Shown: positions 28,190 through 42,641 of the stretch, one piece after another
How the letters are laid out: each line of letters opens with the position of its first letter
How positions within the stretch are numbered: the first letter of the stretch is position 1
Assembly: GCA_020891255.1 (NCBI GenBank)
Contig: BQFW01000014.1
Span: forward strand, 248,001-312,000
From: Entomortierella parvispora E1425
Taxonomy: Eukaryota > Fungi > Mortierellomycota
Length of the DNA: 64,000 nt
Direction of reading: 5' to 3'
Notes under the pieces: generated by a model
Seen by the model: only the letters and a program-made list of their open reading frames with translations
Database searches by the model: none
Told to the model about the DNA's origin: nothing
Made by a program: the position numbers and the translations under genes

Positions 28190-28627
28190 GATGTAAGGAC
28201 TGTTGAACTTGTTCTGAAGGAGAAGGGAGTTGATGGGTCCTGTTGACGCCTATTATGTGGTTTTTCCTGGGAGTGTATGGATGCAGATGCAAGATTAATG
28301 GAACTAGGAAGGTGCTGCGTTGCAAATTTGATCACATGAAGCTGAGCAGGGTGGCAAAAGAGCGGCGCCACGCCGCCACCATGCGAAATCATCACGTGAT
28401 CGAAAGTGTCGCGTCCAAAAAAAATTCAGACCCTTCTGTCGCCCTCCCTAGACAACACCCCCCCCCCCCCATTGAAAACGCTCAATTACCTAGAGAAGGT
28501 ATAGTCTTTGTTTTTATTTGTTGCCAAGAGATGAATTTGCCACCTTTGTGTTGCGTTTCTATACTAAAGATCATAAAAAATGATTCACTTCAAACTTGGA
28601 AGGAGATCGTTATTTCACCAGTCTTGT

Positions 28628-31154
28628 TTAGAGCATGGCGATCATGGAGCCGACCAAGACAAAGACGGTCAAGAATCCAGAAGCCGAGGCAGCGTTCAAA
28701 GCCAAAGCAGAGTTCTTCTTTCCGCCGCCCTTTCCGCCCTTGACGTCGTCATCGCCACCCTTGGTGGGCTTGGGTGGAGGAGGGACACGGTCGGTGGTTG
28801 AGTTGTTGATGGTAAAGTTCAGCTGTGTAGCAACCAACTGGGACATGTCGTGGATCCAACCACGGACCGAGTACTGCATGTCCTTGGTGATGTTGTCCAA
28901 GTTGTTGTTAAAGTCGGCCCAAGTGTAACCCGTCACGAGACCGGGGCCGGTTCTGTTGATCTGAGTATCCCACAAGTAATCGGCCGACAACATTTGGTTG
29001 TAGGTCGCAATACGGGGGAAGAGACCTGCGGGCTTGAAGGACGTGCCAACAATCTCTGTCAGGATCTGTTGGAAGAGTCCGTTGATGGCAGTATTCTTGA
29101 TGATCAACTTGGAGACCAAGGGATGGTCGGGCTGGAAGTTGTAGAGGGTCTCGTAAGAGGACAAGGTCGAGACAGGGAAACCGTTACCGAATGTTCCATC
29201 GAAATCAGTGGGAAGCCACTGCCATTTGCCCGAGGTGCCGAGCGAGGGGTTGAAGTACAAGAAGTAGTTGGAAGCTGACATCCAGTAAGCATCAAAGGAG
29301 CCCATGAGGTATTCACAGGCCATGTTGCGCAAGAATCCATCCAGATCCAAGCGAGTGTTGTTCCAGTATCCAATGGGGTCCGTGGTGTTGACGGGGTCAA
29401 AATTTTGGAGATCCAACATGAACTGGATCAATTGAGTCAAGGGAGCAGCAGCAGTGTTGTTGCCAAGGACGACGTCCGTGTAGGTGTCGGGGTTGTAGCT
29501 GGTGTTGGTAGCTCCCTTATAAACAAGGTCAGCCTGATCGGTCAGAGAAGGTGCATTCATCTACAAAGCGAGGCGAGTAGGGAACGAAGAGAAGCAAAAA
29601 AGAAAAGAAGTCAGTCAAAGCTTTAGACAATCGAAATGAACAAAAGAATGACAGAACCCCTTCTTTACCTGAACCAAAGATCCAATGGCGGCATTGGGGT
29701 TACCTCCGTAAACAGTCTGCTTGATAAAGGACTTCTTGATATCATCGACCATCAGGTACAAACCAAAGGGGTTGTTGTTTACAAACAAACGAACATAGGC
29801 GCCCTGTTGCGTAGGGACACCCACGGCATTGAGCATATCAATGTAAATCTTCTCGCGCATCACGGTAGGGTCTGTGGCCTCGGAACGCAACTTCAAGTTG
29901 GGACGGGAGAAGAAGGTCTGGTTGTAATCGGTATCGAACGAGAACTTGTAGGCCTGCTTCTGGTAATCCTTGGACGACTTGCCTGAGGTCTTGAATGTGA
30001 TGTTCTTCTGATCGTAAATCATATGATGGTCAATCCAACGGAAATCCACTTTGATATCTGTGGCCAAGTTGGGGTTGGCGTTCAAGGCGGCAATCTGGGA
30101 GGGGTCAGCAGTGACATGGATGGTGGCAATCTCGTCGTCGTTAAAGACCTTGGTGTAGGAGGGCCAGGTGGCGAGATAGGTGTAAGGGATATGGGGGAGC
30201 TCCCATTTGGTGACCTGACGTTGGAAGAACTCGTTGTAGGTGTGGGTGGAGTTGGCTTTGGGCAAGGTTCGAGTAAAGTTCTCGGTTTTGACAGCAGCCC
30301 CTGTAGCGTCGATCTCCACATACTGGTACTGGACGGCGGATGTTGTTCCAGGAACCACACCCGTCCAAACAGGGAAAGTCGTCTCGTTGGCCACCAGTTT
30401 GGTAATCTGTCCGTTGATGGACACTCCAAAGCTGTTGGTGGTAGCCGAGGGATACCCAACGACATTGAAGGCAACTAGTTTCAAGATGGAAAAAAAAAAA
30501 AAAAAAAAAAAGAGAGAGCAAACAGTGGGTTAGTCTAGAGTCCTGGGGTTGATGATTTTTTTGCCGTAAACACAAACAAGGCTGTTGTGGGACCGGGGAA
30601 GAGATAAAGAGACAAGAGAGGTGCGTGGTTTAACCCAAAGAGATCATTGGCAACGATGAAGCTCTCGACAATTTAGATGATTATCCATCCGTGAGCACAC
30701 ACACAGGCACGGTCAGGAAATCATCTGAAGTTCAAAAAATTGACTGAATTTTTCCGTCCTGTGGCCAGTGGGAGGACAGATTGGTCGTGTGCAGCGGTCG
30801 TGTGTGCTTGTGCAGAAAGGTCGTGTGGTGCAACGATTCTTTGTCGAAACCCCGGGAACGATGACCAGAGAAAAAAAATTGTTGAACAGAGAATATGTGA
30901 CAGGATCCTAAATAACTCGATCCCAAAAATGGCTGAAAGCGAGCCTGGTTTCCAATGACGGAGGTCCCCTGGATCTCTGTCGACTCACACACAGCGACCA
31001 AAACCTTCATAAGGCAAGTTTTTTCCTTGGGTTCCATCCTTCTATTTCTAAAGGCAAGACACTTGTGAAGGTTGAAAGGAGGGTACATACTTTGAGCCAT
31101 TGAGACAGACGCCAGGGTGGCCAAACCGGCCAGACCTGCGACGATGCGAACCAT
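28628..31154 (-). CDS. CotH kinase-family secreted/GPI-anchored protein #1 (exons 31091-31154, ~29665-30474, 28628-~29552)
   Basis: Signal peptide MVRIVAGLAGLATLASVSMAQ; FKTSGKSSKDYQKQAYKF; RPNLKLRSEATDPTVMREKIY; GLYLMVDDIKKSF; DAYWMSASNYFLY; WQWLPTDFDGTFG; PPPPK linker and hydrophobic C-terminal tail. Confidence 0.92.
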
Positions 31155-32007
31155 GGTCGTTGAAGGAGGGTTGAGATTCAAGGGGAGTTGGGAGGGTAAA
31201 GTCGAGGGGTGTCTTGGCAAACGGTTGCTAAACGGCAACTGAAGGGGGAGAGGTGAGGTATTTAAGTCGGAGCACGACAGGGAAAGGCAGGGCAAACAGG
31301 GGTGCTCTGGGGCAGAGAAGAGGGGTCGGTGAAGAACGAGAACAAGAGAGAGGAAAGGAAGCCGACTCCAGGGGTTTGTCTAAATAAAGCCGACGAAAAG
31401 GCCTGAACATCCCTCTTCTCCCGAAAAAAACACACTCGCCGTTTGCCCGACTCACCGCCTTCTCGGCCACCACACACACAAAAACCCCTTTCCCCCAGAA
31501 TTGCTCTCAACTCCCCAGCAGTTGGACACACCGGGTCCGCAACAATTGAAATGCAGCGCATTCCTTTTGGAAAGAACAATCCAAACGACCAAAGTCAAAA
31601 AATCGCCTGCGGCAAGTGAGCGTCTAGTAGACATGCACATACTGCCGACGCCCTCTTCACTCTTGTCAACCCAAGAAGGAACGCCGCTCGGTTATAAATA
31701 ACAGGCCTTTGAACGATAAACCAATCCTAAAAAAAAATAACCAGCGGGCTGGAGGACAAACATTCATGCGTCGTTTTACGAATGCTGCCTTGCTTTGTGC
31801 TCAACTGACTGGCTTTAATCTTGACTGAAGAATGGACATGACGACAACAAAAAGTGGACAGCAGAGGTACTCGATTGTTGTTGGTATACGCTTTTTTTTA
31901 ATGGTTTTGTGACGATGTGATCTATGAGTGTGTGTCGAGAACAGTACTGTACAGTACAGCAAGGGGGAGGAGAACGATGGGGGAGAACAGAAAAATAAAG
32001 AAACTTT

Positions 32008-33900
32008 TTAGAGAGCCATGGCAATACCGACAGTCAAGAAAGCGAGCATTCCCTGGACCATCCAAGATTGGGAGGTCAGGAACGAAGCCGAGCTCACGTT
32101 CTGTGACTTGTCGGTTTCTTGCGAAGGGTCATCATTCTCCTCATCCTCGGGGTTGCCCTGATCACCCTTCTTGGGGGGAGGGGGGACACGATCGGCCACA
32201 CCAGCGGGAATCGTAAAACCCAAGTCCTTGGTGACCACATCGTTCATTCTCTCGATCCAGGACAGGATACCGGTTTGCATGTCCTTAGTACTGTTGTAAA
32301 CGTTGTTGTTAAAGTCATCAAACGTAAAGTTGTTGTTCTTTCCAACACTCAGACGCGTCAAGGAGATGTCCCACTTGGCATCGAGCTGGAGCATCTGGTT
32401 GTAGGCCTTGGCACGGGGAAGCATGGCCTCGGGCTTAAAAACGGTTGAAACAATCTCCTTCATGGTCTGCTCAAACAGGGTGTTGATGGCAGGGTTCTGG
32501 AGGATCAACTTGCTGACCAGAGGCTTGTCTCCACGGACAGCAAAGTCACCGTAGGTCTTGTACGAGGGAGGGGTGCTGGTGGGGAATCCGCTTCCGAAGG
32601 TGTTGTCGAAATCAGTAGGGAGCCACTGCCATCTGCCGCCGAGAGAGGGGTTCTTGTACATGAAGTAGTTGGATCCAGAGTACCAGTAAGTGTCAAAGGC
32701 TCCCATGAGGTACTCACAGGCCATGTTGCGCAAGAATCCATCCAACTCCAGACGGGTGCCGTTCCAGTAGTCGACGGCGTTGGGGTTGTTCACGCCATCA
32801 AAAGCTTGAAGGTCCGACATAAAGCTGATAAGCTCCCTGAGAGGGTCTGTCTCGGGATTGTTTCCGAGATTCTCAGATTCATAGCTGACTTTGTCATAGT
32901 CGGCGGTTGTGGGTCCCTTATAGATCAAATCGGCCATGGAGGTGTAGGCATTCATTTGGACCAAGGAGCCACGGAGAATACTTGGGTCTCCAGCATGGAC
33001 GGTCTGCTTCAAGAACGACTTTTTGATATCGTCAACCATAAGGAAGAGACCGTAGGGGACATTGTTGACATAGAGGCGGACCCAGGCACCTTGCTGGGTG
33101 GGGACACCGACAGAGTTGAGAACATCGATATACAACTTCTCACGGAGCATGGTAGGATCCTGGACCATGCTTCTCAGCTTGATGTTGGGGCGGGAGAAGA
33201 AGGTCTGGTTGAGCTTGGTGTCAAACTTGAGCTTGAAAGCCTGCTTGGAGAAATCCTTTGAAGACTTGCCAGAAGTCTTGAAGGTGATGTTGCGAACAGT
33301 GTGGATGGTGTCTGAGTTGATGAAACGGAAGTCGACAAAGTAGTCCTGTTCAGCCTTTGGGTTGGCGTGCATCTCGGCGATTTGGGCAACAGGGGCCGTG
33401 ATGTGGATGGTGGCAATCTGCTTTTGCTTGAAGGCCTTTGTCTTTGAGGGATAGGTGGCCAAGTAGGTATAAGGCAACTTGGGGAGGTCCCAAACTGTTG
33501 TGGGTCTCTCAAAGAACTCGTTCAAAGTCCGGGTATCAGTGACGTTGGCCATCTTGCGAGTGAATGCCTCAGTCTTGACCACCGTACCGGCAGAGGAAAG
33601 CTCAACATAAGAGTATTCAACCGAGCCACTTGTACCGGGAACAGAGCCAGTCCAGACAGGGATGATACTGTCGTTACTGGACAACTTGTGAACAGTCCCG
33701 CCGATAGAAACACCAAAGGAACCAGAACCAGAGGATGTGTAGCCGACAACATTGAAAGTGACTATGCAAGTGGGGTGAGTGGACCAGTTGATTAGCAATT
33801 GGAGATTGCTTTGGAGATCTCCATTTGGCACAAGTCATCGGCGCTTACTGTCGGCAAAGGCAACAGAGGCCAGGGAAGTGAGGGCGAGAAGCAGTTTCAT
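32008..33900 (-). CDS. CotH kinase-family secreted/GPI-anchored protein #2 (exons 33849-33900, 32008-33761)
   Basis: Signal peptide MKLLLALTSLASVAFAD/ITFNVVGY; the same CotH motifs (RPNIKLRSMVQDPTMLREKLY, DTYWYSGSNYFMY, WQWLPTDFDNTFG); hydrophobic C-terminal tail. Confidence 0.93.
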
Positions 33901-35154
33901 GACGGACTGCAAATGCTGAGAATGGAGCGGTCGTAAGCCGAAAGTATGCAATGAAATGAGTTGGTGAAGGGGAGGAGGGGAGGAGATGTCTGCTGGGCGA
34001 TGAAGAAGGGGTGAAAGGAAAGGTGTGGAGTGGATTCTGGGAAGCTGGTAAGGGACGGAGACGTGAAGAAGGTAAAGATGTGGGATCAACAGCCGACCGG
34101 GTTTTATGGCAAAAAGGACAGGGTATGATACAAGCGTGTGGAAAGAATGAATGGGGAGAAGACTGAAAAAGAAAGAGTTTGACGCGACGTCTTGGATCAA
34201 AGCTCTCTGCAATTATCTCTCCTCCAAACCCATCTTCTAGATAGAACGATCCCAAGGGTCGGTCTGTTGCAGGGGTGCATTTGCAAAACGTTTTCCTGGT
34301 CCTGTCTCGGTTTTGCTTTTTGGTTCGACCTGACTATGCAAAACTCTGGGAGAAACAAGGTCCCTGGCCAAAGTGCCCCCCTAGGTCTCGTCCTCTGCTC
34401 GCACTTCTTTTTTCTGAAAAACGACCCATCCTCTCCCAGGGTTGCAACCCTGCCAAGATAGGGGTGTGCTGTCGAAGTTATCTGGTGGATATGAATAGAT
34501 GGCAGCTGCGAGGAGGACAGCGGCCAGTCCAGCAAGCAAACATCAAGGGCAAAAAAAAAGGTCGCGTTCAGAAATTTCCGGGCCCATCCCACCTTCTAGT
34601 TAGACAGAAGACGCAACATCCATGTAATGCCCCGCCAATTTTAGCAGGCCACGAGCCAGGGACTCTGGCCCTGGGTTTGAGCAGGGGTCGTTTGATTACC
34701 CTTTTGCCAGCGGAGGTAGAGAGAGAGAACAGGATGGGGGCTGTTTCAAGTGGCGAAGTTGCGGACGATGGAATCGGGGAGGAAGAGCACAGTCCTGCCA
34801 GTCCAAAATATGCTTTGCGCGCTTTCCCGGGATTCCAAAGATTCTTTTCGCCACTCTGAACAGGCAGATCGACGAGCGGAAATGATACACAAGGCTCAAC
34901 GAATCTGCTTTTTTTTTTTTTTTTTTTTTTTGCTGTTTCCCTTCCCTGCTCTCCCTGTCTTCAAGACCAGCAGACGACCACCCAATTGCACAAAAAGCAC
35001 TTTTTCGCTACGAGAGAATGTCTAGTCAACGTTAGTGATAAAACCTATCTTTAGGTCAGTCAAGATGTTCATGACCAAACAAGTACAAATAGCCACTCTC
35101 TTTTATTGCGTAAGTGCGTGTACGCTTCTGTGTATAGGTCACCATTCAGGGCTT

Positions 35155-36321
35155 CTAAAGGGCATCTGCCAGTCGTCTTGCCAAAAGACTGGATACACTC
35201 TCGACCATCATGCGGATGGTGGCGTTTCCTGACGAAATGAGATCAACCTGCTGCGTCATGGGATGTGCACCAGGAAGTCTCTTTTCAGAATCGAATACGC
35301 CACTGTCCTGTCCTGCTTCCATGGCCTCAGTGATACCCACGAAGGGAGCATTACAGATCAAATAGTTTGGCCACACAATGTCGTCAAAGTAACCTGGAGG
35401 ATCGACCCAGTATCCTACGAGCATCGAGTTGTGTAATCACGTTAATTTCTTCTGGCAAGTTGATTTCATAGAGCGTCAAGTGCACACAAGGTGAGCAGCA
35501 ACAATAATGAGCAGACTACGGGGCCCTTACCCTCTAGTGTAGCATATCCTTTCCTAGACTCGCGTCTATCTTTCAGGATCTGATATGGAGCAGTGAGGAA
35601 GAACTTGAAGTCAATAGCGTTCCTCAATTGCTCATCCACGTAGAGGATGAATCCATCCAGAATGACAAACATCGTCGTCATTCGTTCCTCCTCAGGGAGA
35701 GGGGCCAGAATCTTTTCTCTCAACTCGTCCAGGATGTTTTGGGGTATGGGGGATGACAAGGCCTTGGAGCCGACGGGATTCTTGTCCTCCAACGAGTCGA
35801 ATCCCTCAGGGAATACACCATGCTTTCGAACATGGCTCAATGTGGCGTTCATGGCAGAAAAGTCGATGGCCGCTGGGCAGTCCCAGTTGGCGAGGCCATT
35901 CTTCGGGTCGATCGGGATCTGGACTTCTGGGAGATAGAAATCGTCCTGGTGAACAATGGTGCTGTTGGGCAAAATGGCCTTGAGGTAGCGAGCCACAGTC
36001 TGTGTGATCATACCGAAGAATCGGATTAGCCAAAACGATCTCGCACGCCATGCAATTCGCCCCTCAAAAAAAGATCTCCTCTTTACCGTTTTCCCGCCAG
36101 ATGATGGTCCACTATAGATTGAAAGCGGATCTGCCCTGGTTAGAGATGCCCTGTTTGTCAACGAAACTATTCACCTTGCTTCGCCTTGTCCGTGCGGACT
36201 CCTACCTCAGTCCAATGGTGACGACTCTGGTGATAGTCTGTGAGGTATCGATGCCGGTGCTACTGGGGGTAAGGAGGGGGTTTGTGACCCCGTTGTGGAT
36301 GGGCTGCACAAGGGTTGGCAT
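35155..36321 (-). CDS. NRK1: Nicotinamide riboside kinase (uridine kinase-like P-loop family)
   Basis: VVTIGLS/GPSSGGKT/TVARYL (P-loop on the 25-nt exon 36087-36111); IVHQDDFY; NWDCPAAIDF; ILDGFILY; RESRKGYATLEG; YWVDPPGYFDDIVWPNY. Confidence 0.88.
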
Positions 36322-36699
36322 TGTGAGTGTGGTGGAATGACCAATGGAGTCAGTGCAGTGAAGTTCAGGTACGGTGGGAGAGCTGATGAGTTGATGGGGC
36401 GAGCAGAATGACGGGAGGGTGAATAATGACAAGTCGTGATTGGATGGATGGACAGAGGGACAGATGGATGGACCAATGTCAGTCGATGCGCAGATGACAG
36501 AGACAGACGGACAGCCAGACGGACGGACAGACAGACAGACAGACACCCAGTATCACATTGTGGGCTGGGCTGGTCCGGTTTGGTCCATTGGCGTAGGTGG
36601 AGCCGCCGCTTTGGGTTTCTTTTTTTTTTTTTTTTTTTATTCTTCTTTTTCTTCTTTTTCTTCTTTGTTCTCTTTCTCTCATGGGCAGATGCATGCAAC

Positions 36700-36765
36700 T
36701 CAACGCATGTGCATGTGCATGTGCATGTGCATGTCACTCTCAGTGGATCTGTGGATCTGTGGATC
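36700..36765. repeat. Simple repeats (gcatgt)n and (ctgtggat)n upstream of NRK1
   Basis: Directly visible, adjacent to (gaca)n and poly-T tracts. Confidence 0.7.
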
Positions 36766-38930
36766 TGTTGCCATAGTTTCGTTCCTTTGCGCTGCAACGT
36801 TGTCGTCACTTCCATCGGGTCAACTCCCAAGGGCGTCATAGCAACATCTTGCTGGGGTCTCGGCCTGCTGTACCACCAAGGGAGCACGCGTCCTTCTTCC
36901 GGTCGGATGATGACATCTCTGCACTTTGCGTACTCTTCCTGACTATGGGCGACAAGGGTGATCTCTGGGATGACTTTGGTCATAATCTGCGGATGTTGCT
37001 AAAACGAACCAGATCGCTGCGATGGGGGATGCTCCTTGATCTTGCATGTGTAGAAATGACCCATCCTATTTCCTTGTCGTGTGATGATCCATGCTATCAC
37101 TTGGTGATAGTGTCTATTTCGGTGGTTTGATGGTCAATGAGCTTTCTAGGAGGCCTTCTGAATATATGGCCAGGTTATAGTGGGAATACAAAGCAATCAT
37201 AGCCCTTCAATCACCCCGTGAAGGACTTTGTTCTCCTCCTCAGCTATCCGGCATATCAAAGGTGTAGCGTTCATTCTCTTTCAGTAAAGGAAGAAACATG
37301 GAAAGTGCATTCCCATGAGACTTGCCACCAACTCTCCTTGAATGCTTCTCCAATCTTTTTGAACTTCTTCAATACTTGAAGGTACGAAGCCTCGTCTTGG
37401 ACTTGATGAATTTCCGCGTCTTTTGGATGCGGTGCTGTCTGGAAACGAGAACATAGACAGGAGCCCCGATCTGAGTCTAGTGAAATGAGCGTGTGCCTTC
37501 TATCCCCTGTTATTGACACGCGCACTCCTTCCATGCATTCGGTCTCCCGGCTCTTTTTGTCTCACCCTACATTTCGAGGGGGTTCTGAGGGGGCTCCCCT
37601 TTTGTGGCGTGCATGCCCTGGTCCATCTCTGCAGCTTTGGTCTCTTGATGTCTTCTCGGAATTCTGTCTCCGTCCCCCCCAACTTTGACTTATTTTTGAC
37701 CGCGCAAACGGGCTGACTTTACTTTTTGTTTGTTTGTTCCACTTCTTGTCAGGCCCTGGCGAACCGTACCCGATCAAGCAAGGCTCAATGTCCAACAGGA
37801 TCTGATGGCCGCCATGGGGAACTGCAGTACAGCGCCTACCTGCTGAATATGTATTTGTAGACTAGAAACATCCAACACGCCCCACCTTTATTCGCCGCAG
37901 CACGATCCATGTAGATGGTCCGGGCCGTGCCATGCGACAGAAGCATCTGGAGACGACCAGCTCCTGTCATGGTTGGTGGCAACGTTCCATCCTCGTTCCC
38001 CTCTTTCGTTCCAGAAATGTAGTCGAACAGGAGGGCCCTTGAACCCAGAGACCAAGAGGTAATGGCTACATGTCATCATCTGGCAATCAATTGCTGGTAC
38101 CAACTCCTGATGTTGGTTTTGACCGTTACATTGTCTGCGTGTTTGTACCTTTGTGGACAGGACAGCGAAGAGTGCTATTCTTGGAAAGGGTTTTTTTTGT
38201 TTCTGCGCTGGGCCCTTTAGCTATTTATCCGTGTTGTCTGTGTAAAAGTAGCAAGGGCGTAAAGTGGAGCAAAGACACGTTCTGTTGCATTGCTTTGTGA
38301 GACTACCGCTTTGTGGGACCTAGTACTGAGAACAACCTGGCGAACCCAGCCCGTGCGACCACACCATGGCCATCGTCAACTCCACCGCACAACCGTCGAT
38401 CAAGGTTTCCATTCTGAAGCAGGGCGACGGAGCCAACGGCGAAAGAAAGATTATTTTTGTAATTGCGTGAGCACACCATGATAGAGCGGACCATGAACAG
38501 ACTAAACCGTAAACGCCCCCAGTGGTCAACCAACCCAACGATGTCCGCCGTTTACTCTTTCTCTCCCGGGCTTTTGAGGCCGCCAATTTGACCCAAATAG
38601 TTTTTTTCGACCCCTACCGAGGAAAACAGGCAAAAGCAAGCCCCGGGGAATCTGTCATTGGGCAAAAAGTCAAAAAGAGACCGGAACTGACTATTAATAA
38701 AGGCACCTCGACCTCTTCCTACTTTTTTTTTCTCTCTTGTCTCTCTGTCTTCTTTCTTTCTCCCTTTCCGTCTTCTTCTCCTCTTTACCACACCCTTCCT
38801 CGGCGGCTCATTGCGCTCCTTCGCCTTCTCTGCGTCCTGCCTTTTACGTTTCACCCATCTCGCACATACACCACTTTTCCATCACATACTCGCGCTTCCT
38901 TCCGAACCTTTCACGCCAATACCCTTCACA

Positions 38931-41900
38931 ATGGTTCGACTCTTCTTCGGACTCGCCGCAATGGCCACTGTGGCCTTTGCAGACAGTAGGTTCCCCTTCA
39001 CCTTGACCTTCACTAGGTTCCCCTTCATCTTCACCTTCACTCGTTTCAGAATCCGTCTTGCAAACACGCGTCCATTACAGACGCACACGATCAATTTCTT
39101 TGCACTCTGTCACACACCCCACACGACCGACTCACACGACCCACATGACCAATTTTATGGCCTGCACTCACACGACCATTGAGCACATACCATGCAATTG
39201 CTGCCAATGGTCGTCACATCTTTAATGATCAAATGAGGGTCTACTCTTGAATGTTGTGCACCTCCCTTTCTCCGTTTTACGCTGTCCACTGAGAGTGCAG
39301 TGCCTACGCATGATTTCGTTATCCTTCTCACTTGGCTCTCTGCTCCCCTCCGTTTTTTTTACCTTTCCCACCCTTGCAGGGCGTGGTGTCACCCCTCCTT
39401 GCCACATTCTCCTCGAAAAAGACTCCAAGACTCTCTCCTCCATATTCTTTCCCCTCTTTCGTTTTCGCATGTGGCGCCTTTTTCCTCTTTCGGCCTTTTG
39501 CGACAAACAGGAGAAGGGCCGGGCGTTGACAAAAAGTTGAGACATTTACTCATTGCTCATCGCGCGAGCAAGCCTGCTTGTCTACCGGATGAACGTTTTT
39601 TTTTTTCCCTTGTTTTTTCCTTTTTCTGTTTTCCGGTTTGTCCAACTGCCTCCTTTCCATCTTTTTTTTTTTTTCCGGTCGATAAGAGAAGAAAAAACGA
39701 CTCCTGGTGTTCGAGGCTTTGTGTCTTTTTTCCTAATGCAGCGCAATGCGCGACCTAGGTCGTTGTCGGGTTAATTTATCGTTCCTTCTTGGTCTTCTCT
39801 CCACTTGCTTCCAAAGAACACGAGCTGAGAAATTCAATCGCTTGTGCTCAGATTGCTCACTTGTCTCCCAATGGCTGAACCATCCACTCGTGTTCCCCGG
39901 TTTTTAGTTCAATAACCCAGGGTTGATCAAATTCTCGTGAAGATAGAAGAGAGGGAGGGGATGCACGGCTGTGGGTTTGACCAAGGGGGTGAAGGACCCC
40001 ATCTTGCATTCATGCAACGCAGGGCTAGAGATGTTTCTTATTTTTAGACCCCTTTGGCTCCCTTGGTCTTTTCAATCTTTTTTTTTCCTTCTTTTGTGCC
40101 CTGGCGACGTTTATTTGGACCTGCATTGGTCGTTTTTCACGGTTTGCTCCCTTTTTTGATCACTTGATCGCTTTACCGGGAATGACAACGGTTGGGAGGA
40201 CAAGGGCGTGGACACAAGCATCCACATGTGCATCCACAAACAAATGATGACCTACCAACATACGTCTGTGCACAAGGTCGATTCAGTGATGCTGACCATC
40301 TCTCTGTCTCTATTGCTCTTCTCACCTAGTTACGTACAACTGCATTGGTTATCCCACTGCCACCAATGGTGCCATGGGTGTCTCTATCAAGGGCGCAATC
40401 ACCAAGCTGTCCACGAATGAGACCATCTTCCCTCTCTGGACCGGTGTCGTCGCCGGCACAACTTCTGCTGACGAGTACCAGTACGTCGAGCTCGGTGCCA
40501 CTGGCGCAGCCGTCAAGACTGAGTCCTTCACGCGCAAGCTGAACGCCACCACGGACACTCACACTGACTTTGAGTTCTTTGAGCGTCCCGTGACCAAGCA
40601 CGATCTCCCCCGCCTGCCTTACACCTACCTGGCCACCTACCCTTCCAAGACCAAGGCCTTCAAGGAGGATCAGATCGCCACCATCCACCTTACCGCCCCC
40701 CAGGCTGCCGTTGATGCCATGAACGCCCAGCCCGAGTCCGAGGCCGACGTCAAGGTCACTTTCCGTTTCTTGAACGCCAAGACCGTCTACACTCAGACCA
40801 ACATCACCTTGAAGACTTCTGGCAAGTCCTCCAAGGAATTTGCCAAGCAGTCGTACAAGATCAAGTTTGATGGCGATTACAACCAGACCTTCTTTTCCCG
40901 TCCCAACCTCAAGCTGCGCTCCATGTCCACCGAGCCCACCATGATCCGTGAGAAGCTTTACATTGACATGCTCAACTCTGTCGGCGTCCCCACCCAGCAG
41001 GGTTCCTATGTTCGTCTGTATGTCAACAACATTCCCTACGGTCTGTTCTTGATGGTTGATGATATCAAAAAGTCGTTCATCAAGCAGACTGTCTATGGTG
41101 GTGACAACAACCAGATCCCTGGCTCTTTGATCCAGGCCAATGCTCCCTCTCTGACCGAACAGGCCGACCTTGCCTTCAAGGGCAGCCTTACTTCCAACTA
41201 TGGCAAGGATGTCTACACGATGCAGAACCTCGGCAACAACCCTGCCACCGAGCCTTTGCAGCAATTGATCAAGTTCATGGCCGATCTCGATGCTTACAAG
41301 CCCAATGCCACTACGAACCCTGTTGGTTACTGGACTGATCGTCTCGAGTTGGATGGTTTCTTGCGCAACATGGCCCTCGAGTACTTGATGGGTGCCTTTG
41401 ACAACTACTGGATGGCTGGCTCCAACTTTTTCATGTATTTCAACCCCAAGTTGTCCACTACCGGTAAATGGCAGTGGCTCCCTACCGATTTCGACGGTAC
41501 TTTTGGAAACGGTGCTGAGCTTGATGCCAAGGCCTCTTACAAGGCTCTGTACAACTTCCAGCCTGACCACCCCTTGGTGTCCAAGTTGATCATCCAGACC
41601 CCCGAGATTAACACCATGTTCAACACGGTCTTGAAGGAGATTGTCAGCACGGCCTTCAAGCCCGAGGCCATGAACGCTCGCATGGATGGTTTGCACAAGA
41701 TGATTGCCTTGGATGCCGCATGGGACTATTCCTTGAAGCGCATGTCGCCCGGCACGGACCTCAAGTTCACGATTGATGACTTTAACAACAACTTGGTCAA
41801 TATCACCAAGGATATGTCCGCTGCCCTGAAGCCTTGGGTCCAGGACCGCGCTGACGCCGTGGCCAAGGAGTTGGGCTTTGCCATCCCGGCTGGTACCGCG

Positions 41901-42068
41901 GACAGGATCGCCCCCCCTCCTCGCCCTGGCAAGGGTGGTAAGGGTGGCGATGATGATGATGATGATGGCGGAAAGGCATCGACCGACAACTCTGCCATGT
42001 CCATGATGGTCTCGACCTTTGCTCTTGTGGCAACGGTTGTTGCCTCGAGTTTGGTGGTCTTGGCTTAA
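38931..42068 (+). CDS. CotH kinase-family secreted/GPI-anchored protein #3 (exons 38931-38985, 40330-42068; 1344-nt first intron)
   Basis: Signal peptide MVRLFFGLAAMATVAFAD spliced in phase 1 to ITYNCIGYP, homologous to ADITFNVVGY of copy #2. CotH motifs and a hydrophobic C-terminal tail are present. Confidence 0.9.
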
Positions 42069-42641
42069 AAAAAAAAGAGACCCCCTACCCCAAAAGAGAA
42101 AGAAATATAATACCACTTTCGTTGTTTCCCGCGTTTTCCTCTTCTTTTTTTCCCCCCTTTTAACGACCCATGCCTTCTCCTCCACCCCTTCATTGAAGAA
42201 ATGACCCTCCCTTCTTGTTGTTTGCTGTTGTTTTTTCTATTGCATACTTTTTAAACTAGCTACTGTAATTTTACAACGCTACCCTTCCTTCTCCAAGAAA
42301 TAAATAAAATAAAAAAACCCCAAAGTAAGACAGAAAAGTGCGGTACTGGATGGGGACAGGCAAGATCTTCACTTCTATGATCTATCCTAGCGCCTATGGT
42401 GCCGTGTCCCATAGTCCGTTTCCTGATCTGGTCCGTGGTGGCTTGTGCCTGAATTTTTGTTTACTCCATTGACAGTCACGCAATCTGACCCTCCTCCGAG
42501 CCTGTCTATCTCAGCCTGACACCCCTTCGACCTGCACACACGCAGACACACACACTCCGCCCAAAGGTTGAAGCATTTCGGTCCCTGGTTCAGTCCTTCA
42601 TTCATTACCTCCCCTCCCCCTCCGTCATTAAACACATCACC

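Follow-up and report, generated by a model that had tools for sequence, protein, structure and literature searches.

A clustered 9-nt word in the long first introns of Entomortierella parvispora CotH genes is conserved across Mortierellaceae

CotH genes and their first introns

The 64-kb window (the whole stretch of Entomortierella parvispora DNA analysed here) contains three CotH genes, and in all three an exon encoding the signal peptide directly precedes a phase-1 intron. CotH#1 is located on the minus strand; its exon 1 (31091–31154) encodes the signal peptide MVRIVAGLAGLATLASVSMAQ plus the first base of a split codon and is followed by a first intron of 616 nt (30475–31090, GTATGT...TAG), whose boundaries were re-derived from the sequence. 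CotH#3, on the plus strand, has the same layout, with exon 1 at 38931–38985 (signal peptide MVRLFFGLAAMATVAFAD and the first base of the split codon) and a first intron of 1344 nt (38986–40329, GTAGGT...TAG). The first intron of CotH#2 (33762–33848, minus strand) measures 87 nt and holds no copy of the element described below; it serves as an internal contrast. The sizes, phase and position of these introns had been proposed in the original prediction, as had the lack of the word in the shortest of them, and the re-derived boundaries bear this out. The deposited E. parvispora proteins P0001 and P0036, from which the joined N-termini were taken, begin exactly as the intron models predict, the N-terminus of P0036 corresponding to exon 1 of CotH#1 joined to exon 2; exon 2 of CotH#3 was used as the query in the protein search. 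The genes hosting the element pass the curated cut-off of the CotH domain in Pfam (PF08757), and their deposited proteins carry the name spore coat protein H.

The two long introns were expected to have no other obvious similarity, and indeed nothing alignable was found in common between those of CotH#1 and CotH#3 except the word CACACGACC. Each matches only itself in the genome, poly-T runs aside, and no repeat family was found, so a transposon or repeat was rejected as the source of the word. No conserved open reading frame was detected within the CotH#3 intron.

The 9-mer in the window

The window contains six exact copies of CACACGACC, all on the sense strand, three in each of the two long CotH introns, and no further exact copies besides these. 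In dinucleotide shuffles of the window, 0.48 copies were expected; the maximum among 100 shuffles was three, and none reached six. The CotH#1 cluster (30783–30827, minus strand) consists of exact copies at 30819, 30796 and 30783 in sense order, i.e., with spacings of 23 and 13 nt, and lies 263–299 nt 3′ of the 5′ splice site. In the CotH#3 intron, the cluster (39084–39177, plus strand) comprises exact copies at 39120, 39133 and 39169 and two copies with one mismatch each, CACACGATC at 39084 and CACATGACC at 39142, and including these variants it is found 98–191 nt downstream of the 5′ splice site. All of these copies, exact and variant, were thus present where they had been predicted. The start-to-start spacing of 13 nt recurs four times across three independent introns, and the flanks and spacers are unrelated from copy to copy and from gene to gene. 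A 10-bp perfect inverted repeat (ACGACCATTG / CAATGGTCGT, 39172–39214, plus strand) overlaps the third CotH#3 copy; its second arm constitutes a partial antisense copy of the motif. We also observed that the base following CACACGACC is often an A.

Meaning had further been attached to four ACGACC cores upstream of CotH#2. This part of the original prediction did not survive: the 6-mer is frequent, with 37 occurrences in the window compared with 22.7 expected (31 once the copies internal to the 9-mer are removed), and the four cores are of mixed orientation and indistinguishable from background. Pairs of the 7-mer core ACACGAC were no commoner than those of the control word, and microsatellites dominated among them. 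Because neither ACACGAC pairs nor ACGACC exceed control or background, the 9-mer is the unit. In Mortierella sp. GBA30 and M. alpina, genes of the CotH#2 type have motif-free first introns of about 90 nt, and the CotH#2-type gene is without the element in all three species checked (E. parvispora and these two).

Clusters of the 9-mer in the genome

Throughout the 38.9-Mb genome, CACACGACC occurs 372 times, compared with 271 occurrences of the reversed word used as control. Given this modest excess (1.37-fold), most single copies probably have no function. Same-strand pairs within 60 nt exist at nine loci genome-wide, whereas about 0.1 are expected from the density of the word and one was found for the control word. 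Triple clusters are confined to the CotH#1 and CotH#3 introns in the entire genome, and the seven other loci have a same-strand pair. Nine same-strand pair matches at seven loci stand against no inverted or everted ones, and every cluster that could be oriented lies on the sense strand of its downstream gene. The word is rare and clustered and is not a CA-rich tract. A tRNA source was rejected as well; the T-arm of tRNA-Phe contains the word, yet only 7 of the 372 genomic copies are of this type.

Three of the nine cluster loci belong to CotH genes, in each case to the 5′ region. Besides the two introns, a pair is found in the promoter of a third CotH gene (C11), 236–287 nt upstream of the ATG; this gene is without a signal-peptide intron. 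A fourth CotH paralogue has two copies of the 8-mer CACACGAC at about −100 and −85. Exact clusters thus exist in 3 of the 14 CotH paralogues, and about 8 of the 14 have the 8-mer in their 5′ region. Another pair is located in an 850-nt intron of an SPX-VTC polyphosphate gene, and further clusters lie upstream of several other genes, mostly encoding membrane or secretory proteins, including the pairs upstream of the ATG at L004 and L006 (L002–L006 being non-homologous loci). Hence, the suggestion that the element marks the CotH family holds for a subset of its members, but neither for the whole family nor in the sense of being CotH-specific. A CT-rich tract and the ATG come within 75–290 nt after the pair at L004, L006 and the C11 CotH gene, and CT-rich sequence also follows the intronic clusters. 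All three introns with clusters are exceptionally long (616, 1344 and 850 nt), with copies 134–340 nt from the 5′ splice site.

Conservation in other Mortierellaceae

The orthologue set consisted of 14 CotH first introns from nine other Mortierellaceae species and of nine orthologous loci with a total of 186 kb. An unbiased k-mer scan of 16 CotH first introns from 10 species returned CACACGAC as the top 8-mer (9 of 16 introns) and CACACGACC as the top 9-mer (7 of 16), compared with best counts of any word in the null of 7 for 8-mers and 5 for 9-mers. Motif discovery, which the original prediction had named as a check, ranked the word first in these Mortierellaceae introns and found it conserved across genera. 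With E. parvispora left out, there were nine sense exact copies (null about 0.07) and four antisense ones (null 0.03–0.05), and none of 1500 simulations reached the observed sense or antisense counts; for the antisense exact copies in the orthologous introns, this is an enrichment of about 100-fold. All 19 exact copies within the nine orthologous loci are placed in CotH first introns or at most 1.3 kb upstream of a CotH start. Eight of the nine other species have exact copies at the CotH first intron or upstream region, and five of the nine inside the intron. No blastn similarity among the CotH first introns was detected beyond the word, which is conserved in orthologous CotH introns whose remaining sequence has diverged beyond alignment.

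The arrangement of copies varies between species. The CotH#1-type intron of Linnemannia elongata contains four exact copies and one variant within 130 nt, the CotH#3 intron of M. claussenii has three exact copies, and the CotH#3 intron of L. elongata has a 25-nt tandem repeat bearing CACACGACA three times. In four of the orthologous CotH#3 introns, an exact antisense copy is accompanied by a sense or near-sense copy at a distance of several hundred nucleotides. In Dissophora ornata, a pair antisense to CotH is found in the promoter, at −381 and −348. Together with the C11 CotH gene of E. parvispora, this promoter qualifies the idea of an intronic element, which is correct for the introns of CotH#1 and CotH#3 but not in the sense of an intron-specific one. 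The signal-peptide exon is conserved across all orthologues, and all nine CotH#3 orthologues examined retain a first intron of 870–1900 nt. Exact copies are missing from the long introns of M. alpina and Lunasporangiospora selenospora and from the CotH#3 intron of P. epicladia; because such long orthologous introns without an exact copy exist, intron length is not explained by the word alone. A metagenome scan for the 13-nt-spaced pair recovered 120 unrelated contigs, many of which came from high-GC organisms and had tandem arrays; a CotH gene was present on none of them.

Transcripts and RNA structure

Transcript contigs of Linnemannia join exon 1 straight to exon 2, so the long first intron is spliced out. 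Their leaders upstream of exon 1 extend over at least 187 and at least 470 nt, and several of the copies assigned to promoters could be within long 5′ UTRs. No transcript starting inside the intron was seen among the contigs compared, from which the candidate contig P0013 was left out. Searches against Rfam gave no match to a known RNA family; with no conserved open reading frame either, a nested gene or non-coding RNA in the introns was rejected. No stable common fold was found across the clusters (z-scores of −2.0, +0.5, −1.8, −0.1 and +0.2), and in the predictions the motif copies stay single-stranded.

Discussion

These results establish a genuine element, scarce in the genome and clustered, with an association with CotH genes and conservation in both orientations. 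The shared cis-element at the heart of the original prediction is therefore upheld, as neither chance, nor a transposon fragment, nor a CA-rich tract. We consider it somewhat probable that CACACGACC forms homotypic clusters of putative sites for a transcription factor, functioning as a promoter element or intronic enhancer. That a protein binds the element on the DNA and that the element drives transcription is what we infer from these data. An enhancer and a splicing signal had both been envisaged; DNA-level binding of a factor is tentatively favoured over a splicing signal because antisense copies are enriched in the orthologues.

According to this proposal, CACACGACC would be the putative recognition word of a sequence-specific DNA-binding transcription factor of Mortierellaceae, and direct-repeat clusters of two to five copies would build a 5′-proximal regulatory module, placed in the promoter, in the 5′ leader or, then acting as an intronic enhancer, in a long start-proximal intron. 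The first intron would house the module in the lineages of CotH#1 and CotH#3, and the module may be what keeps these introns kilobase-sized, compared with about 90 nt in the sister gene CotH#2. Sites would change in position, number and sometimes orientation, with the word itself held by selection, and the carriers of the clusters (three CotH genes, the SPX-VTC subunit and several membrane proteins) would represent one co-regulated set.

Homotypic clusters of transcription factor sites occur in promoters and in first-intron enhancers, including instances of intron-mediated enhancement. The clusters described here resemble these in the presence of a short exact word in several copies per 50–130 nt near the 5′ end of a gene, in a promoter or first intron, and in the fact that the word is kept while positions and copy number turn over and flanks are not conserved. 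They differ in the strictly head-to-tail arrangement of the E. parvispora copies and in the recurrent 13-nt start-to-start spacing. In yeasts, VTC genes are controlled by bHLH factors such as Pho4 through E-box/PHO-type CACGTG sites. CACACGACC has CACG in common with these, and one cluster is located in the SPX-VTC polyphosphate gene, but the word is non-palindromic and without a CANNTG core, hence it is not an E-box. Among the known sites compared, the Pho4 E-box, the SREBP SRE, the Upc2 SRE, SCB, Ace2/Swi5 and UPRE each had at least two mismatches and were rejected as candidates, and we know of no fungal site that matches CACACGACC.

Function at the RNA level is possible but, in our judgement, rather unlikely. 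Here, the C/A-rich, unpaired 9-mer repeats in sense orientation within the intron or 5′ leader of the pre-mRNA would be candidate sites of an RNA-binding protein, acting as an intronic splicing enhancer that helps to define the 52–64-nt signal-peptide exon beside a kilobase-sized intron or controlling intron retention or mRNA fate. The co-orientation of all E. parvispora clusters, the length of the three host introns with copies 134–340 nt from the donor, and the predicted single-stranded state of the copies are consistent with such a role. In animals, hnRNP L-type proteins bind CA-rich intronic splicing enhancers or silencers, which are likewise C/A-rich, unstructured, repeated, sense and located in long introns near a splice site. 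However, CACACGACC differs from these in needing its CGACC part, as the CA-rich 7-mer alone is not enriched in pairs, and in being also antisense-enriched and present upstream of intron-less gene starts. The approximately 100-fold antisense enrichment in orthologous introns, the antisense pair in the D. ornata promoter, the pair upstream of the intron-less N-terminus of the C11 CotH gene, and the word-free long introns of M. alpina, Lunasporangiospora and P. epicladia CotH#3 all argue against an RNA-level element.

In a variant of the RNA-level explanation, a 5′-proximal sense copy would pair with a distal antisense copy and thereby shorten the effective intron, similar to the complementary “zipper” boxes in long yeast introns (RP51B-type) that bring the 5′ splice site and branch point together. 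In line with this, all four orthologous introns with an antisense copy also hold a sense or near-sense copy, and the 10-bp hairpin overlaps a CotH#3 copy. In contrast, the clusters of E. parvispora and L. elongata are without a full antisense partner, so pairing is not general; furthermore, 9 bp across 175–750 nt are weak, and none of the folds reached significant stability (z-scores of −2.0 to +0.5).

It is improbable that the clusters mark internal alternative promoters in the long introns, giving rise to transcripts without the signal-peptide exon. A CT-rich tract follows the intronic clusters, as it follows the pairs at L004, L006 and the C11 CotH gene, which would fit such promoters, but the Linnemannia transcripts join exons 1 and 2 and have their leaders upstream of exon 1, no start internal to the intron was seen in the comparison without P0013, and the signal-peptide exon is conserved in all orthologues. 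Still less do we expect a neutral, functionless by-product of tandem micro-duplication or slippage of a CA-rich word, shared between paralogues by ancestry or gene conversion. The exclusive direct repeats in E. parvispora also fit tandem duplication on a C-rich strand, the word opens with a CA run, and the tandem repeat in the L. elongata CotH#3 intron is a case of three CACACGACA units. Yet flanks and spacers are unrelated between copies and genes, and the word reappears, differently placed and on either strand, in genera with intron sequences that are otherwise saturated by change, as well as at non-homologous loci such as VTC and L002–L006; the 7-mer core pairs do not exceed those of the control word, which means that the 9-mer is not accounted for by CA-microsatellite behaviour. 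Coincidence of a 9-mer by chance, for which the small word size speaks and nothing more, is negligible in view of the window shuffles (0 of 100 at six copies), the nine pair loci against about 0.1 expected pairs, the simulations (0 of 1500) and the exceeded k-mer null.

Returning to transcription factor sites as the preferred explanation, we tentatively put forward a wider scenario, which we would not yet call probable: a regulator specific to Mortierellaceae or common to Mucoromycota may join the CotH subset, SPX-VTC and membrane-protein genes in one regulon, and selection on intronic enhancers may have kept the kilobase-sized first introns through the radiation of the family. To our knowledge, intronic enhancers are essentially unexplored in early-diverging fungi, and these genes provide a concrete case from this group in which long introns are preserved together with a putative regulatory word. 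What is at hand is a short exact word with defined carrier genes and conservation across genera, and with the neighbouring CotH#2 as a natural negative control.

Among the surface invasins of Mucorales, the CotH proteins have been studied best, and they are expanded in Mortierellaceae (PMC10079182). A literature search for cis-elements or regulators of CotH genes found none described, and a literal search for CACACGACC returned only primers and constructs; as the original prediction had supposed, the element is apparently undescribed so far. If the word were to control the CotH genes of Mucorales too, it would offer a first point of entry into how transcription of the mucormycosis invasin family is controlled.

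The CotH gene models and a shared word in two long introns

When the gene models in the window were re-derived from the sequence, all three CotH genes were found to contain the Pfam CotH domain and to begin with a signal-peptide exon of 52–64 nt followed by a phase-1 intron. The models reproduced the originally reported phase and intron lengths of 616 nt in CotH#1 (30475–31090, minus strand), 87 nt in CotH#2 (33762–33848, minus strand) and 1344 nt in CotH#3 (38986–40329, plus strand). The N-termini of the deposited proteins P0001 (CotH#3) and P0036 (CotH#1) match the joined exon 1 and exon 2 predictions exactly.

The original prediction was that the long introns of CotH#1 and CotH#3 share a cis-element, either a transcription factor-bound enhancer or a splicing site for an RNA-binding protein. 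The six exact copies of the 9-base word CACACGACC lie where it had placed them, with no further exact copy in the 64-kb window, C14:248001–312000 of the assembly (0.48 expected; maximum of 3 in dinucleotide shuffles), and both one-mismatch variants claimed for the CotH#3 intron are present. As had also been noted, the two introns do not align with each other beyond the motif; each is unique sequence in the genome, and neither contains an Rfam match or a conserved ORF. No weight attaches to the ACGACC “cores” proposed for the region upstream of CotH#2 and for the sequence before the CotH#1 ATG, since ACGACC is ordinary background.

Rarity and clustering in the genome

A genome-wide count, suggested along with the prediction, showed the word to be rare: 372 copies on both strands of the 38.9-Mb assembly, or about one per 105 kb, with 271 for the reversed control word, so that single copies are only mildly over-represented. 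Seven of the 372 are accounted for by T-arms of tRNA-Phe genes. Same-strand pairs within 60 nt, however, occur at nine loci, compared with about 0.1 predicted from density and one for the control word, and the only triple loci in the genome are the two CotH introns of the window. The signal disappears with the shorter core ACACGAC, pairs of which are as frequent as control pairs and mostly represent microsatellites. Three of the nine cluster loci are CotH 5′ regions, which together account for well below 0.1% of the genome; an association on this scale cannot be due to chance.

The E. parvispora genome encodes about 14 CotH genes, about eight of which carry the 8-mer CACACGAC in their 5′ regions. 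A third CotH carrier (C11:328889), which has no intron after the signal peptide, possesses a sense pair of CACACGACC at −287 and −236 nt from the ATG, and in a fourth (C7:498503) two CACACGAC copies precede the ATG by about 100 and 85 nt. The pair on contig C11 is itself preceded, at a distance of about 300 nt, by a tRNA-Phe(GAA) gene (L018:2641–2715), whose T-arm contains the 9-mer by coincidence.

Another cluster locus is an SPX-VTC polyphosphate gene (C2:217500–221500; L001:1341–2192, minus strand), in which an intron of about 850 nt separates the SPX exon from the VTC exon. Of the three copies in this intron, all in sense orientation and 147–340 nt from the donor, two are exact (at 147 and 182 nt) and one, farther in, is a CACACGACA variant. 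The CotH#3 intron is laid out in the same way. The remaining clusters (L002–L006) are located 75–1000 nt upstream of ORFs, encoding an F-box/LRR-like protein (L002), a Ser/Pro-rich protein with signal peptide and single transmembrane segment (L004), a protein with an N-terminal transmembrane segment (L005) and a small PLDc_N membrane protein (L006); the target at L003 is unclear.

Conservation in Mortierellaceae

Protein searches with CotH#3 exon 2 identified orthologues throughout Mortierellaceae, and nine genomic loci (186 kb in total) were fetched from E. beljakovae, M. claussenii, Dissophora ornata, Mortierella sp. GBA30, M. alpina, Linnemannia elongata, Podila epicladia, Actinomortierella wolfii and Lunasporangiospora selenospora. 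All CotH#3 orthologues have an 18-codon first exon followed by an 870–1900 nt intron; introns of CotH#1-type genes measure 280–1350 nt and those of CotH#2-type genes (N-terminus MKL...) about 90 nt. In Linnemannia transcript-derived contigs, exon 1 is joined directly to exon 2 in both gene types, behind leaders of at least 187 and at least 470 nt; thus, the long introns are genuine and spliced out.

Every one of the 19 exact CACACGACC copies in the nine loci lies in a CotH first intron or precedes a CotH start by no more than 1.3 kb. The CotH#1-type intron of L. elongata contains four exact copies and one variant inside 130 nt, the CotH#3 intron of M. claussenii two sense and one antisense copy, and both CotH genes of Mortierella sp. 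GBA30 and D. ornata carry the word. There was no exact copy in the M. alpina locus and none in the examined introns of Lunasporangiospora, P. epicladia and A. wolfii, where the only exact copy in each species precedes a CotH start by 0.8–1.3 kb. An assembly gap in the CotH#1-type intron of D. ornata (L022:5057–5066), 22 nt upstream of the motif, may hide further copies. In the CotH#3 intron of L. elongata, a 25-nt unit with one CACACGACA is tandemly repeated three times (L025:10255–10320) and looks like a site cluster arising through tandem duplication.

A motif-blind k-mer scan of 16 CotH first introns from Mortierellaceae, one of the two groups for which the prediction had called for motif discovery, ranked the same words first: CACACGAC was the top 8-mer (9/16; null maximum for any word 7) and CACACGACC the top 9-mer (7/16; null maximum 5), and the introns share no other similarity. 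With E. parvispora left out, nine sense copies were observed vs 0.07 expected in Markov simulations and four antisense copies vs 0.03–0.05; none of 1500 simulations attained either count.

A second word, TGAGAGCA (often TTGAGAGCAATT), occurs in six of the 16 introns (null mean 0.10), with copies at L021:4952–4959, L023:11157–11164, L024:11005–11012 and L025:11403–11410. It lies about 950–1350 nt into the intron in CotH#3 orthologues and also in the E. parvispora CotH#1 promoter (window about 31500–31515, minus strand), and is possibly another conserved regulatory word.

The three-gene CotH cluster is syntenic across Mortierellaceae (window 28600–42100; L023, L024, L027), comprising a short-intron #2-type and long-intron #1-type and #3-type members, and often adjoins genes for an actin-family protein and ribose-5-phosphate isomerase; in E. 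parvispora, CotH#1 and CotH#2 are inverted relative to CotH#3. Deposited CotH#3-type models of P. epicladia, A. wolfii and Entomortierella chlamydospora lack the short signal-peptide exon and begin inside or after the long intron (L026:8676–8730; L027:10001; P0027); in P. epicladia, the annotated start is 1.3 kb downstream of the true exon 1 (MVKFLIGLATLASMAFAD).

Anatomy and likely mode of action

Among 40 exact instances compared, the flanks show no consensus except that about half are followed directly by an A, and tolerated variants (CACACGACA/T, CACACGATC, CACACGAGC) differ in the last two positions. Neighboring copies are spaced by 7–56 nt. Adjacent starts are separated by exactly 13 nt in four cases, distributed over three independent introns (window 30783–30804 and 39120–39141; L025:2037–2058 and 2086–2107), with unrelated 4-nt spacers, which hints at a constraint on spacing, for example through tandem dimer binding. 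Among 120 unrelated metagenome contigs with a pair at this spacing, none carried a CotH gene, so that the metagenome scan was uninformative. A perfect 10-bp inverted repeat or hairpin, ACGACCATTG/CAATGGTCGT (window 39172–39214), overlaps the third CotH#3 copy, and its second arm reproduces part of the motif in antisense.

On the sequence evidence, we lean toward recognition at the DNA level by a putative transcription factor, because antisense copies are enriched as strongly as sense copies given strand composition, because the element occurs upstream of an intron-less CotH gene and in antisense in a promoter, and because homotypic clusters of several copies that turn over typically mark factor-binding modules. 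Less probable, though still a serious alternative, is a signal for splicing or RNA binding. It would fit the strict co-orientation in E. parvispora, where clusters are exclusively head-to-tail (nine same-strand pair matches within 30 nt, no inverted or everted pairs) and every orientable cluster is sense with respect to the gene that follows; it would also fit the position of copies close to where exceptionally long introns begin, and with long 5′ leaders transcription may extend over some “promoter” copies. When five clusters were folded as RNA, the structures were not consistently stable and left the copies mostly unpaired. An internal promoter within the long introns and a neutral origin by slippage are both unlikely, and chance co-occurrence is excluded.

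E-box/PHO, SREBP, Upc2, SCB, Ace2 and UPRE sites each differ from the word by at least two mismatches, and none is claimed as a match. A literal literature search for the word returned primers only, and a comparative-genomics paper on CotH covering Mortierellomycotina does not mention introns. The CACACGACC element is real and under selection, and it constitutes a new cis-regulatory word of a known element type, not a new kind of system.
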